Source: Perna viridis (taxonomy: Eukaryota). From it: a stretch of 64,000 nucleotides of DNA. A model generated the notes under the pieces. That model did not search any database. It was not told the origin of the DNA and was given only the letters and a program-made list of their open reading frames with translations. A program made the position numbers and the translations under genes. The stretch is from assembly GCA_037379345.1 (NCBI GenBank), contig CM074519.1, positions 31,336,103-31,400,102 of the forward strand, in the 5' to 3' direction. Shown in pieces: positions 30,742-37,972 of the stretch (within the stretch, counting starts at the first letter, position 1; each line of letters starts with the position of its first letter).

Positions 30742-31245
30742 CTCCATTCTAATCAACCCAACTTTTCAAGCATAGTCTCTTGAATTCACCAGTCCATTCT
30801 AATCAAGCCAACTTTTCAAACATAGCCCATTGAATTCAACTGTCCATTCTAATCAACACAACTTTTCAAACATAGCCCATTGAATTCAACTGTCAATTCT
30901 AATCAACCCAACTTTTCAAGTATTGCCCCTATGGTTTAACTGTCCATTCTAACTGTTTTTGAGTTCACCTTTTCAAGTCCTTGGGTACACCTTTCCATTC
31001 TAATCAACCCAAATTTTCAAGCATTGCCCCTTGGATTCAACTGTCCATTCTAATCAACCGAAGTTTTCAAACATAGCCCCTGGGATTCAACTGTCCATTC
31101 TATTCAACCCAACCTTTCAAGCTTTTCCTCTTGGATTCAACTGTCCATTCTAATCAACCCAACTTTTCAAGCATAGCCCTTGGATCCACCTGTCCACTCT
31201 AATCAACCTAACTTTTGAAGCATTGCCCCACAGATTCAACTGTTT
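30742..31245. repeat. Minisatellite, about 50-bp unit
   Basis: ccattctaatcaacccaacttttcaagcatagccc..ggattcaactgt repeats. Confidence 0.88.
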
Positions 31246-31406: not shown

Positions 31407-31745
31407 TCAGCATGAAATTCCAAAAGTAGGTAACATTAAACATGGGTTTTCTGGAGCAACCTGTTTGTCATCGAGTCCTTTTAGTACAACAGTTATTCCC
31501 CTTGGTTTAGCAATATCCACCATACATTGTCTACTTTCTGGTGATATTTTATGATCATATATATCCAAATGTTCCAAATGTTCACATTTTATCATCACAT
31601 CAATTATGGCTTTCTCTGACATTGTCCGTATCCAACTTAGGTTTAACTGTCGCAATTTTTTTGTATATTTACAAAGTGCAGCTAAAGTTCTGTCTGTTAA
31701 ATGTTTACATGCACATAAACTTATAGACTCCATGTGAGGTAGATT
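31407..31745 (-). CDS. Tpt1N-LRR gene exon 5 (LRR, terminal)
   Basis: NLPHMESISLCACKHLTDRTL...PTFGISC*. Confidence 0.88.
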   Translation of the reverse strand, partial: NLPHMESISLCACKHLTDRTLAALCKYTKKLRQLNLSWIRTMSEKAIIDVMIKCEHLEHLDIYDHKISPESRQCMVDIAKPRGITVVLKGLDDKQVAPENPCLMLPTFGISC

Positions 31746-34700
31746 CTGGAAGAGAATCATTTATTGATATGTTATTCAGTGGAACAAACATTCTCTAGGT
31801 CTGTGAAAAATGTACATGAACATTTTACTACGAGATCCAAACCCTGACCTATTAAGATTAATTCTGTAAAGTATACTACAAAATATAAACGTCTTTTGAA
31901 CATAGAGGATATTTAATGTTTCAATTCTATATTACTATTTTGGTTAATAAAAAGAGAGAAGTTTGCCCTATCCAAGATACCTTTTCAACACATCCAGAAA
32001 AGCCAATTTTTTTCAAGATTTTTTGTGTGCGCAAAATGCAGCCTTTGTTGTTTTTTACATTCTTAACATAGTCATAGATGTAAAGAAAATTTTGACTAAA
32101 AGAATATATATATTCTTTTTTGAAACATAATACTCTCAATATCATAAAAATGGTTCACGTCTAATTATCTGTATTTAATTTTACACTTGACCATACATGA
32201 AGATGCAATTAGATATATATTTGGATTGGTTTTTCATTGACTGATACGAGAAGCAATTTGATTTTATTTGATAGTTGATATTTATGGTTGTCCAAAAATA
32301 CCCCTAGTTTACCAAGTTACACAGACTTTAAGAATTTTACATTCAAAAACTAGATCTTATCATTTTTATTTAACTAAAATATCATTGAAATAGCAGTCTT
32401 TATTAAAATAAAAAAAAATTCTTTTTTGAAACATAATACTCTCAATATCATAAAAATGGTTCACATCTAATTATCTGTATTTAATTTTACACTTGACCAT
32501 ACATGAAGATGCAATTAGATATATATTTGGATTGGTTTTTCATTGACTGATACGAGAAGCAATTTGATTTTATTTGATAGTTGATATTTATGGTTGTCCA
32601 AAAATACCCCTAGTTTACCAAGTTACACAGACTTTAAGAATTTTACATTCAAAAACTAGATCTTATCATTTTTATTCAACTAAAATATCATTAAAATAGC
32701 AGTCTTTATTCAAATCAGACAATGTGATTCATGCATGTCAAAAACCCACCAATTTCAGTTTTATTTCTTCTTCATTTTGTCTTATTTGGTGATTTTAGAT
32801 ATATGATTTATCGACCTAACTTTACAACAAACATGATGATTTTTCATTCAAAATTGTCAACTTTCCTTTCATCTGTGGCAACATCCCTTCAGCACCTGTG
32901 TATGGAGTGTTCATATCACAACTAATACCTTATGCCAGAGCTTGCCGAAACTACGCAGAGTTCTATCGTGCTAGAACTCTAACAAGTAGGCTTCTGGAAC
33001 AGGGTTATGTTGCTACAAGATTGAAGTCATCACTACAGAAGTTTTATGGTCGTCACCATGAACTCGTGGATGGTTATAGTGTATCTATCTGCACCATGAG
33101 AACTGATTTATTCAACGGGTCATAGTTTTCCTTTCCACGCTTGTCTACCCCGGACTTGACTTTTTATGAACAACTCAGTGGGTGAATAGAAAAGGACGCT
33201 TACCCTACCAGTGCACCTGGTCCATGCTCCCAGTTTTTAGTGGAGTCTGAGTTGCTCATTTGATTTTGTTACTTTGTATGTATGATTTTAGTTACTTTAT
33301 GTTCTTTGTTGTGTATGTCTGTTTTCCATGTCTGGTCTTTGTCCCTGGATTACATTCGTTTGATTACTGCTGTAATCTTGGTTCCCTTGATTACTCTTTC
33401 TCAAAAATGCAGATCTGAATACAGAAATCATTACCATTCCATAAAAAAATATTGCATTTGTAGATTTAAAAAGCATTGCTCGTTCGGTGGGTTTTTATAC
33501 TCCATGAATCACTCTACCATTGGCAGTGTCTGAATTTTATATGGACTGGTACTTAATGAAAGTTTTCTTGACTGGTACCTTTAGTAATTGTTGCATTAGG
33601 TTATCTGTAATAACATATCCACAATCTTTTAAACTGAGCATCTTCAGGTTAGGACATGACCTCCAAATAAGTTTGATTGTTCCTTCAGTAACATACACTC
33701 CATCTAGGTTAAGGTGTTCTAATACTGGTATAAGAAGCTGTCGAAGGGTGCCATTGTTCAATTTCTTCTGCCTCTTCAATCTGTGAATCATTTTACTGAA
33801 AACAATTAAATATTTGTAACTTTGACAGCATTATTTTTATATGTCCTAATTTATGTATCTTGTTATATTGCTGCCCATCCCTCTTCATCCAAATACTATA
33901 TTACTACTGTATACTTTTGACAGACTTTATTGATTTTTTTATCCACCATTTGACATCATAAAAGTAATCTCACTTTGGTTTTAATAAATTTGGTTTTGTG
34001 TGCCTTAAAATTGGCTATAAATTCATTGATTACCTACATGTAAGTAGCAGTCTTTATAAAAATAAGACAGGAGGTAATTCATGTATGTAAATAACCCACT
34101 GATTTCAGTTGTATTTCTAATCCAGGAACAGTTACAGACCACATAACCAAGTCTTGGTTCATCAGTCTGTAACAGACCACATAAACAGTCTTGGTTCGTC
34201 AGTCTGTTACAGACCATATAACCAGTCTTGGTTTGTCATTCTGTTACAGAATACATGACCAGTCTTGGTTTGTCAGTCAGTTACAGATCACATAACCAGT
34301 CTTAGTTTGTCAATCGGTTACAGACCACATAACCAGTCTTAGTTTGTCAGTCAGTTACAGATCACATAACCAGTCATAGTTTGTCATTCTGTTACAGATC
34401 ACATGACCAGTCTTGGTATGTCATTCTGTTACAGACCACATGACCAGTCTTGGTTTGTCAGTCAGTTACAGATCACATGACCAGTATTGGTTTGTCAATC
34501 AGTTACAGATCACGTAACCAGTCTTGGTTTGTCAGTCAGTCACAGACCACATGACCAGTCTTGGTTTGTCAATCAGTTACAGATCACGTAAACAGTCTTA
34601 GTTTGTCATTCGGTTACAGACCACATAACCAGTCTTGGTTTGTCAGTCAGTTACAGATTACATAACCAGTCATAGTTTGTCATTCTGTTACAGATCACAT

Positions 34701-37700
34701 GACCAGTCTTGGTTTGTCGATCAGTTACAGATCGGTTGTTGCACTTTTGAGATAAACATTATATTCTGTGAAAGTACTTTAATTCATGGAAACCAATTTT
34801 TGTGGATCAGGGAAGAAACACAAGCTCGTGGTTTGAAAGTTTTCAGTATACACAACCATGGGAATCTATATATCTTCGTGGTTTGACCTACCTCAAAAAC
34901 CATGAAAATTGGTACCCCGTGAATAATAGTATTTTCACAGTAGATTGTATATGAAATCAGCACTCTGCAACAGTTATCATTCTTAATTTTGTTTGATTTG
35001 GTTGATTTTAGTGGTGATTAAGTCAACTGGAACTACTCTACCATTTTCACTACACTTACTAGAAAGGCTGAGGACATGCGATAAAGGACTAAGTATGGGT
35101 TTCTCTTAAGTACAAGTCTGATTAGTGAAATGACTATTTTCATATAAAAATGTAGCATATGTAGACCAAATAAGTACCATTTGTTTGGTGGGGTTTTCTT
35201 CACCATGAATCACTTTAGTATAGGCAGTGTCTGAACTTTATATGGACTGGTACTTAAAGTATGTGCATAATCTGGGAGAATACTATTGCAATTTTGTTAT
35301 GGTACAAAAATATACATGGAAAAAATGGTCACTTATACATAAATAAGACATATTCTTCCATACTTATTTATGTATTTTTTATAATATAAACAGGAGCCTG
35401 AAATGCTCACCTGGTTACAGTTTGTCTTTCAAAGGCAATAAATTCAACAAAAAGTCATCCAACAATTTTACTCATTAAGACTTTAGTAGGACTTAACATA
35501 AGGATCATTTCAGCAATTGGAAGTTTCTTTCTATCTATTATAGTTATAAAAATATTGGCTGAAAACTGTAAAAAAAAAAAAAAAGTCATTTTTCATCTTT
35601 CAAGGGCAATAACTCTTACAAAGAGTCGTCCGACAACTTTGATCCCTCAAAGACTTTTGTAGGCCTTAAAATAAGGATCATTTTGGCTAAACTTAACGGT
35701 TTTAGAGATAAATGCAAAAAACTTCTTTCTGACATATCTTTGGCCAGGTGAGCTAAAAAGGCAGCCCCATCACTTTTTAAGAAAATATAAGTATTTAAAC
35801 AAATGTCTCCATTTCTTACTAAATTTCATAAAAAAGTACTGCCTGAGGACCATTAACCCTGAATGACCTTACTTGATTAAAAATTCATCAGGAAACTCTT
35901 GTAGATCATACATATCAATGTTTGATGATATAAAATCTAAACATGTTGATACCAGTGTTGTTACATTGGAACTTTCATGACAGTCATTCTGAAATGAAAA
36001 AAGGAATATATAAATCTTGATGATTTTGTATTTGATGAATTTGTTGGGGAAAGGGGCTGAAATAAACAGACATTTAAGACACCAAAAACATTGATTTTTC
36101 AATCTTTAAGTGTAGAATTTGATTGACATATTTTAATTGATCCCATATTTTTTAATTAGATGGGATTCTATTAGTTTTATATGGTTTAGGGAAGTAAAGG
36201 TTATCGATTAGTAAAACAGTCATGAATTGGATTTTGTAAACATTATTAAACATAAAAACCCATTTAATACTGCTACGTCTTCAGCAAGCAACCCATCAGG
36301 CTCTGACAGGACTACCAGTAACACTTTTTAGTTCCCCATTGGCCACATTCACCAAAGGGGTTTGCACTTTGTCTGTCTGTCTGTCAGTCATGCCAATCAG
36401 TTTTCCACAGTGTTTCTGTCATATTTGCAGATGCATGTAATTAGTTCATTTTTCCATAACAAATTACAGGTCAAATTCTAGTTTTGTTCTCGTTTGTTAA
36501 TTTTGTTAATTGCTGACTGATGGCACTTGGACTTTGACAATAAGTTGCAAAAACACAGTTTTCCACACCTTTTTCTTCATGCATGGTCAAGTGTAAAATT
36601 AAATACAGATAATTAGACGTGAACCATTTTTATGATATTGAGAGTATTATGTTTCAAAAAAGAATATATATATTCTTTTAGTCAAAATTTTCTTTACATC
36701 TATGACTATGTTAAGAATGTAAAAAACAACAAAGGCTGCATTTTGCGCACACAAAAAATCTTGAAAAAAATTGGCTTTTCTGGATGTGTTGAAAAGGTAT
36801 CTTGGATAGGGCAAACTTCTCTCTTTTTGCAGATTTTCATTTGATATTTAATGAGTTGCTGTACCTTAACAAATTACAGATCAAGTTCAGATGTTGTAGC
36901 AAAGAGGTTTGCACTCTGTCTGCCTGTCTGTTAGTCTTACAAATAATTTTTTCACACTTCTTATGGACGGTCATACTTGAAGATAATTAATTGATATTTA
37001 ATATAATGCTTTACCATAACAATTTACAGATCAAGTTTGAAAGTTTTGTATGAGTAATGGTCCTTGGGCTTACAAAACTAATGCAAAAATTGCAGAAATT
37101 GGATTTTCTACACCTATTATGCATGAAGTTTGCATTCTATTCCATCACCAAATTTTCCTTTCAGTAAGGGACTTACTTAGTATTACATATTACCATGCGA
37201 TACCCTCAGAATATTTGTTTCATGATCATCAGATGTTATTTTTTTTCACATTAGTACAAATGTTTTACCTGTTCCAAATTTCTACAAAAGCGGGCTCTGA
37301 CATAGGTTTTCCCATTGTTCATCTTTGACTCAAATCTTCTAGCACCTCTGTGTGACAGTGAATTATTTATCTTATCCTCAACCTCTTCCAGAGTGTGGAA
37401 TCTTTTCATGATACCCAGTGCCATCAGCTGTGACAAGTCAACAAAACCTGCAAAAATATTTTCTTTTGAGTGTTGTTTCAATATTTTTTATTGGTTGATT
37501 AAAGTTTGAAATAGTATTATTGAAAGATTTTTTGGCAAATATGACAAGCCTTCCAATATTGTTTAATTTTTCTGTATGTACCTGATGCTGCTAAAAATAA
37601 AGAAAGTTAAGTGACATTCAGGTTTTGCAAAATATTTTCTGACTTCATGCCATCCTAACAGAATATCAACTACATCTGTCGTAGGATTAACGTGAACTTA

Positions 37701-37972
37701 TACATGTATCCATTCCACATAACATACATGTATTTTCCTTTAGTAATAAACTATTTAAAGTAGTTTTAATTATGTAGTACGAAAGTTAAGCAATAAAATG
37801 TACATGCAAAAGTTATATAAAGAGAGACTCCTATATTCAACCAACCTCCATCAAGAACATCAAGGCCTTCTTTTAGTGCACCATATCTGAGTATGTAACA
37901 CAGTCTTTTAGACAGGCGGTCTTCAGATTTGTCTTCAACATATTTCTGCTCCTTTATACATGAAGATGCCAT
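31407..37972 (-). CDS. Chimeric protein: Tpt1/TRPT1/KptA N-terminal RNA lobe + BC-box-like motif + AMN1/FBXL-type leucine-rich repeats; 5 exons, 978 nt, 325 aa
   Basis: Exons: 37972-37846, 37447-37269, 35988-35873, 33795-33579, 31745-31407; GT-AG introns with consistent phases 1, 0, 2, 0. The N-terminus LSKRLCYILRYGALKEGL..DGGFVDL...RRF...YVRA resembles TRPT1 LSKALSYALRHGALKLGL..DGFVPL...KQRF...IRA. It is followed by VTTLVSTCLDFI..FPDE and Cys-containing LRRs (LEHLNLDGVYVTE, CPNLKMLSLKDC..ITD, ISLCACKHLTD, LRQLNLSW, CEHLEHLDI). Confidence 0.88.
31949..32203 (-). repeat. Inverted repeat arm A (about 255 bp)
   Basis: Near-perfect reverse complement of 36574-36828; the ORF track gives the same spurious peptide on opposite strands. 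Confidence 0.9.
32113..32706. repeat. Direct tandem duplication, about 300 bp, 2 copies
   Basis: 32113-32402 is almost identical to 32419-32706. Confidence 0.88.
32697..33552 (+). mobile_element. MITE family A copy interrupted by a retroelement fragment
   Basis: Left part 32697-32790 and right part 33399-33552, ending atggactggtac|ttaa. Confidence 0.7.
32815..33398 (+). mobile_element. 5'-truncated Penelope-like retroelement fragment (RT C-terminus plus 3' tail)
   Basis: Frameshifted LYNKHDDF / FKIVNFPFICGNIPSAPVYGVFISQLIPYARAC...LLEQGY..RLKSSLQKFYGRHHELV. The 3' tail is shared with the 22450 and 54050 copies. Confidence 0.7.
33579..33795 (-). CDS. Tpt1N-LRR gene exon 4 (LRR)
   Basis: KMIHRLKRQKKLNNGTLRQLLIPVLEHLNLDG...CPNLKMLSLKDCGYVITDNLMQQLLK. 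Confidence 0.88.
34044..35253 (+). mobile_element. MITE family A copy with an internal 37-bp tandem expansion and a nested small MITE
   Basis: Starts gtagcagtc and ends atggactggtac|ttaa; the element sequence resumes directly after the array. Confidence 0.65.
34125..34732. repeat. 37-bp minisatellite, about 16 copies
   Basis: gttacagaccacataaccagtcttggtttgtcagtca repeats. Confidence 0.92.
35388..35759 (+). mobile_element. Second copy of the HINE/pearl-like element
   Basis: ggagcctgaaatgctcacctgg ... ccaggtgagctaaaa; shares internal sequence with 3418-4046. Confidence 0.5.
35873..35988 (-). CDS. Tpt1N-LRR gene exon 3 (BC-box-like)
   Basis: NDCHESSNVTTLVSTCLDFISSNIDMYDLQEFPDEFLI; tttcag acceptor, gtaagg donor. 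Confidence 0.82.
36574..36828 (+). repeat. Inverted repeat arm B (about 255 bp)
   Basis: See arm A. Confidence 0.9.
37269..37447 (-). CDS. Tpt1N-LRR gene exon 2
   Basis: GFVDLSQLMALG...HRGARRFESKMNNGKTYVRARFCRNLEQ. Confidence 0.85.
37846..37972 (-). CDS. Tpt1N-LRR gene exon 1
   Basis: MASSCIKEQKYVEDKSEDRLSKRLCYILRYGALKEGLDVLDG; gttggt donor. Confidence 0.85.

Follow-up and report, generated by a model that had tools for sequence, protein, structure and literature searches.

A gene on the minus strand of a 64,000-nucleotide (nt) stretch of Perna viridis DNA (contig CM074519.1, positions 31,336,103 to 31,400,102; this whole stretch is called the window here) encodes a protein in which a Tpt1-type RNA lobe is joined to a short helical box and a run of leucine-rich repeats (LRRs), without the nicotinamide adenine dinucleotide (NAD+) lobe found in TRPT1 itself. 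The family to which this protein belongs is an ancient combination of two known modules that is new as an architecture. We give an even chance to the overall account developed below, in which the protein is a non-catalytic descendant of TRPT1, consisting of RNA lobe, box and LRRs, that probably acts as a phosphate-binding adaptor of a cullin ligase.

A conserved five-exon gene

The gene extends from position 37972 down to 31407 of the window and comprises five exons with 325 codons, closed by a TGA stop. All four introns are of the GT..AG type, in phases 1, 0, 2 and 0, and the exons divide the protein as follows:

Exon 1, 37846..37972, minus strand: start codon, an N-terminal tail that is disordered, and the first helix of the RNA lobe, with the LSK..LRYGA motif; the phase at its end is 1.
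Exon 2, 37269..37447, minus strand: remainder of the RNA lobe, with the winged-helix strands and both the RRF and the VRA motif; 179 nt, entered in phase 1 and left in phase 0.
Exon 3, 35873..35988, minus strand: conserved linker (N-x-x-H-E), then the first helix and loop of a BC-box/VHL-box-like element.
Exon 4, 33579..33795, minus strand: box helix 2, then a basic stretch, after which the Cys-type LRRs begin.
Exon 5, 31407..31745, minus strand: remaining LRRs, conserved C-terminal tail (VAPENPC..LP.FG) and the TGA stop.

This model was compared by tblastn with nine full-length relatives as queries and the window, except intron-3 positions 35558-35600, as the target. All five exons were placed in order, and the query coordinates abutted at each junction, including that from 37269 to 35988, which joins the RNA lobe to the rest of the protein; the closest relative, P0042, was 74% identical. 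Four relatives lie on intronless Logan complementary DNA (cDNA) contigs of 1233-1910 nt from four different samples, in each of which the fusion reading frame is uninterrupted. In the 723-megabase assembly the gene is single copy. The fraction of words from the locus that were present was 0.18-0.25 in 14 presumed-RNA runs as against 0.75-0.82 in DNA runs, values compatible with a spliced mRNA of ~1.3 kilobases, though short of proof. An earlier note, made from the sequence alone, had described a clean five-exon frame of 325 residues; splice sites, open frame and collinearity with orthologues bear this out, and every motif that it cited is present in the exon translations. The locus is a real, conserved, single-copy protein-coding gene.

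The N-terminal domain is a Tpt1 RNA lobe

Both profile and fold identify the N-terminal ~100 residues as a Tpt1-type winged-helix RNA lobe. When the Pfam profile PF01885 was run on single exons of the window gene, exon 1 matched with an E-value of 0.014 and exon 2 gave no match; exon 1 was also matched when the species' own genome was scanned with the profile. Contiguous orthologues scored 43 and 33.7 bits against a curated cut-off of 26, with coverage restricted to profile positions 2-82 of 177, and all members of our first alignment (8/8) were matched. We also built a profile of the lobe from cDNA references, to which window exons 1 and 2 were added as separate rows, and this matched the solved structures of mouse TRPT1 (2.3e-10) and Clostridium thermocellum (Cth) Tpt1 (3.3e-6).

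For the fold we used an AlphaFold2 model of the Pinctada orthologue, with a mean predicted local distance difference test (pLDDT) score of 82 and a predicted template modelling (pTM) score of 0.62. Residues 16-101 of this model superposed on mouse and human TRPT1 with a Z score of 12.7, a root-mean-square deviation of 1.7-1.8 Å and 33-35% identity. Comparison of the model of the N-terminal half with 48,161 chains, made without Foldseek, placed three Tpt1 structures at the top (Z 12.2, 10.9 and 8.9), followed by La motifs at ~7; the same order of structural neighbours was given for a genuine Tpt1 lobe by Banerjee et al. (PMC6333775). The Tpt1 RNA lobe proposed earlier is therefore upheld by PF01885 in orthologues, by the lobe profile and by the fold match to TRPT1, and the PF01885 match falls, as had been anticipated, over the N-terminus only.

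The ligand pocket is kept and the catalytic lobe is lost

Residue equivalences were set by HMMER alignment to 6e3a and counted across 42 family members:

Cth Lys11 equivalent: Lys in 40/42.
Cth Arg18 equivalent: Arg in 42/42.
Cth His19 equivalent: Tyr in 42/42.
Cth Lys66 equivalent: variable.
Cth Arg68 equivalent: Arg in 41/42.
Cth Tyr80 equivalent: Phe or Tyr in 40/42.

In Tpt1, Arg18 and Arg68 grip the transferred 2'-phosphate, the flipped base is sandwiched by Lys11 and Arg68, His19 contacts the 3'-phosphate only and Lys66 is dispensable (PMC6333775). The lobe has thus kept its pocket for phosphate and base, with equivalents of Lys11, Arg18, Arg68 and Tyr80, and additional arginines specific to the fusion family are conserved too. 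The conserved contact residues make it plausible that the family reads RNA phosphate, a proposition that we rate slightly below even.

The Arg-His-Arg-Arg tetrad is incomplete in the fusion family: positions 1 and 3 are Arg, the His is replaced by Tyr in every member counted, and the fourth Arg belongs to the absent lobe. No match to the NAD+ C-lobe (HGT and H-H-h motifs) was found anywhere in the window, in the cDNA contigs the LRR module follows the RNA lobe directly, with no NAD+ lobe between them, and the QGHS motif is lost. On these grounds the fusion protein cannot act as a phosphotransferase or an ADP-ribosyltransferase. The suggestion that the protein is non-enzymatic, its NAD+ lobe having been replaced, is accordingly confirmed by the end of the PF01885 match at ~82 of 177 and by the invariant Tyr in place of His19. 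Since the NAD+ lobe, the HGT motif and the fourth Arg are all missing, the name '2'-phosphotransferase' that databases attach to such proteins is wrong, and dozens of entries that do not have the catalytic lobe are misnamed in this way.

Descent from TRPT1

The same genome holds a separate, canonical TRPT1 on contig C2, as the earlier note had led us to look for, with LRH, QGH, HGT and HIHF motifs all present. The exon of this gene that matches exon 2 of the fusion gene has the same phases (1 in, 0 out) and almost the same length (173 nt versus 179), and both introns around it lie within one codon of the fusion-gene introns. Since intron phases and positions match those of the genome's own TRPT1, we conclude that the lobe descends from an intron-bearing animal TRPT1; the same match rules out a retrocopy or a bacterial gene as its source. 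On another chromosome (contig C7, 49406173-49406361) there is a further exon of Tpt1 type whose QGHS motif is intact, and the genome may thus carry two catalytic-type paralogues in addition to the lobe-only gene.

Distribution and naming of the family

Exon 2 searched alone against 1.84 billion representatives returned 16 proteins, including the 334-residue chiton protein P0013. In P0001, a 172-residue fragment, the Tpt1-like part runs directly into sequence corresponding to exons 3-4. Two further searches yielded over 40 relatives of full length (306-345 residues), from many bivalves, several gastropods, a chiton, the annelid Owenia, bdelloid rotifers, three starfish and three species of amphioxus, and the fusion is thus conserved well outside the molluscs. 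Vertebrate, arthropod and nematode members did not turn up, in a search whose candidate step was word-based, so that their absence is not shown. The 596-residue repeat protein P0016 (E 7.5e-4) was judged spurious. In a 487-residue amphioxus hybrid model, P0025, the box and first LRR segment occur three times, through either local tandem exon duplication or an artefact of assembly or annotation; this model was left out of the conservation counts.

Database labels for family members are 'uncharacterized', 'hypothetical' or, in UniRef, '2'-phosphotransferase', with one entry called 'SKP2B-like' and another 'FBXL13-like'. Full-text literature searches found no paper on a Tpt1-lobe/LRR architecture, and nothing relevant on AMN1 with Elongin. 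The earlier statement that no such protein had been described thus holds for the literature searched, although the proteins themselves were already in public databases without a proper name.

The LRR module

The linker that follows the RNA lobe has nearly invariant Phe-Glu, Pro, His and Thr-Lys-Val positions; beyond it lie two to three helices and then ~7 Cys-type LRRs, in which Pfam gives LRR_6, LRR_4 and LRR_FBXL15 matches. Among solved proteins, those closest in sequence are FBXL2 (1.7e-36 with the family profile), FBXL17, Skp2, Rad7 and KDM2B, and those closest in fold are Skp2 (Z 18.4), FBXL2 (17.8), Rad7-Elc1 (16.7) and ZYG11B-EloB-EloC (13.6). The solved LRRs nearest to the module are therefore almost all those of cullin-ligase receptors. 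In features of the protein language model ESM, three AMN1 clusters were nearest (0.91-0.92); when the C-terminal module served as a sequence query, all the proteins that came back belonged to the fusion family, and none was a stand-alone AMN1. Kinship with AMN1 is thus a lead rather than proof, coming as it does from language-model features and not from alignment. The Cys-type LRR partner described in the earlier note is supported, as one of the AMN1/FBXL kind, by the Pfam LRR matches, the match to FBXL2 and the AMN1 features.

The last 25 residues (window 31410-31490) form a C-terminal tail, V-A-P-E-N-P-C .. L-P-x-F-G-K, which is kept in bivalves and the chiton, partial in rotifers and absent from the starfish and amphioxus members.

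The box and a possible ubiquitin ligase

Two motifs in exon 3 bear on how the protein might engage a ligase:

35929..35958, minus strand: BC-box-like decamer T-L-x3-C-x3-I.
35875..35895, minus strand: F-P-D-E-hydrophobic stretch, resembling a Cul box or the start of an F-box helix.

In the window protein F-P-D-E stands 12 residues past T-L-x3-C-x3-I. Across the 42 members the Leu of the decamer is kept in 41 and its last position is Val or Ile in all; Thr opens the decamer in 24 members and Arg in 13. The downstream stretch is likewise well kept (Phe 41/42, Pro 37/42, Asp 42/42). In human ZYG11B, the corresponding Leu18 inserts into Elongin C at an interface lined by Cys22, Phe50 and Pro51 (PMC13201589). 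Candidate partners are encoded in the genome, Elongin C on contig C1 and Skp1 on contig C8, each divided among small exons. Docking on some cullin ligase is plausible, and we put it slightly above even. That the partner is specifically Elongin BC, a proposal resting on the motif, is a more doubtful matter. The BC-box/Cul2-5 assignment made at the outset is no more than putative: in Perna viridis the motif conforms to the pattern and is similar to the VHL box of ZYG11B, but its Cys is found in only 26/42 members and the box has no sequence match among solved structures.

Several observations weigh against a phosphate-binding ligase adaptor. The BC-box Cys is variable across the 42 members (C26, S7, T5, A3, G1). 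Compared with solved structures, the box alone, whether as a single sequence or as a six-row profile, gave LRR matches only; the Pfam F-box was not found in residues 105-165, its sole match (E 0.3) falling inside the LRRs; and in structural alignments of the LRRs the box does not fall on the F-box or VHL box that the matched structures carry. In the search with the full profile the match to Rad7 starts at the box, but we do not count it as evidence. The interdomain linker has a pLDDT below 50, in a model whose pTM is 0.62. The exon junctions are backed by orthologues and by the cDNA of relatives, not by reads of Perna viridis itself. Finally, the fourth Arg of the tetrad lies in the missing lobe, so the affinity or specificity for 2'-phosphate may be altered.

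The protein might instead be no ligase adaptor at all: the LRRs would form a protein-binding scaffold with the helix pair as its N-terminal cap, and the whole would bind RNA in a regulatory role, for instance by competing for TRPT1 substrates, by chaperoning them or by tethering an RNA-processing factor. Consistent with this, no solved box matches this one significantly in sequence, the LRRs of RNase inhibitor, ANP32 and NLR proteins also give good structural scores, and part of the box varies between phyla. However, Leu116, Val/Ile124, Phe136 and Asp138 have stayed invariant or nearly so over ~550 million years, which is more than a cap needs, and nearly all of the proteins closest to it in sequence are cullin-ligase receptors. 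We regard a scaffold of this kind as rather unlikely.

A second alternative is that the helix pair is a degenerate F-box and the protein an SCF (Skp1-Cul1) receptor rather than one for Elongin BC-Cul2/5, as in the case of yeast Amn1, which has an atypical F-box, associates by way of it with Skp1 and Cdc53, not Elongin C, and promotes the turnover of Ace2 (PMC6181423). The F-P-D-E-hydrophobic helix does look like the start of an F-box, FBXL2, FBXL17 and Skp2 have the nearest LRRs in sequence and in fold, and the module is nearest by features to AMN1, whose yeast member copurifies with Skp1 and Cdc53 (PMC6181423). Set against this, the only Pfam F-box match is the one at E 0.3 within the LRRs and none lies in the box region, an invariant Leu four residues ahead of a mostly-Cys position, followed by Val/Ile, suits a BC box better, and the structural neighbours also include Rad7-Elc1 and ZYG11B-EloBC. 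An SCF-type partner is thus a live alternative, to which we give a fairly low probability. Lastly, the idea that the decayed 5' end of a TRPT1 gene and a neighbouring AMN1-like gene have been joined only on paper could appeal to junctions without reads from Perna viridis and to an exon 2 that by itself has no Pfam match, but it is close to refuted by the recurrence of the same contiguous fusion in four cDNA contigs without introns and in over 40 gene models of five phyla, by open frames and canonical splice sites throughout, and by the invariant residues of the RNA lobe.

Proposed function

Under the adaptor account, the RNA lobe would probably still bind a phosphorylated nucleotide group, such as a 2'-phosphate/3'-phosphate junction in RNA or a 5'-phosphate end, and the box and LRRs, with Elongin C or Skp1 as the go-between, would probably dock the protein on a cullin-RING ubiquitin ligase. 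Ubiquitylation would in this way be coupled to the recognition of marked RNA or of a protein bound to RNA. In its most extended form, this proposal makes the family an ancient bilaterian reader of RNA 2'- or 5'-phosphate marks that hands RNAs or their bound proteins to a cullin-RING ligase, which we offer tentatively and consider unlikely as it stands.

Animal tRNA splicing proceeds mainly via RtcB, which leaves no 2'-phosphate, and TRPT1 is kept, its physiological substrate being still unclear. A phosphate-recognising lobe with invariant arginines in five phyla argues that such a ligand exists and matters in animal cells. A ligase of the Trl1 type, which uses 5'-phosphate and generates 2'-phosphate, is cited as occurring in amphioxus in passages of PMC3400036 and PMC10680797. 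The Trl1-type domains PF09511, PF08303 and PF08302 gave no match in the Perna genome, in a scan in which control genomes were equally silent. If the LRR half does dock on a cullin ligase, the protein would be the first such receptor with a recognition module taken from an RNA-repair enzyme, and if the reader proposal is true, it would provide a direct link from the chemistry of RNA breakage and repair to protein ubiquitylation.

Repeats within and beside the gene

The introns carry several repeats. A ~250-bp element occurs twice, at 31949-32197 (minus strand, intron 4) and 36580-36828 (plus strand, intron 2). The copies, which are oppositely oriented and share ~249 identical nt, bracket exons 3-4 (333 nt combined). 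Inverted intronic repeats are a classic setting for back-splicing to circular RNA. Intron 4 also contains a 306-bp unit in tandem duplicate (32112-32715, 98% identical), which overlaps the minus-strand ~250-bp element, and intron 3 contains a 37-nt tandem array of 16.3 copies with 86% matches (34129-34733). A 50-nt tandem repeat of 5.3 copies (30979-31243) follows shortly after the stop codon and may belong to the 3' untranslated region.

Comparison with known systems

The fusion family shares with TRPT1/Tpt1/KptA the winged-helix RNA lobe, its pocket residues and the intron phases of the TRPT1 in its own genome, but it has no NAD+ lobe, HGT motif, fourth Arg or QGHS motif, and the catalytic His is fixed as Tyr. 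With AMN1, the yeast form of which is a cullin-ligase receptor, it has in common a similar size and Cys-type LRRs placed after a short helical box, whereas AMN1 has no RNA lobe. FBXL2, FBXL17 and Skp2 provide the best sequence and fold matches for its repeats, yet the fusion family has no recognisable F-box and its repeats are combined with a different N-terminal partner domain. Finally, the Leu-x3-Cys-x3-hydrophobic helix, the Phe-Pro element and the LRRs that follow recall ZYG11B/ZER1 and Rad7-Elc1, a likeness at the level of the motif only, since the fusion family has neither a conserved Cys nor an ARM domain.

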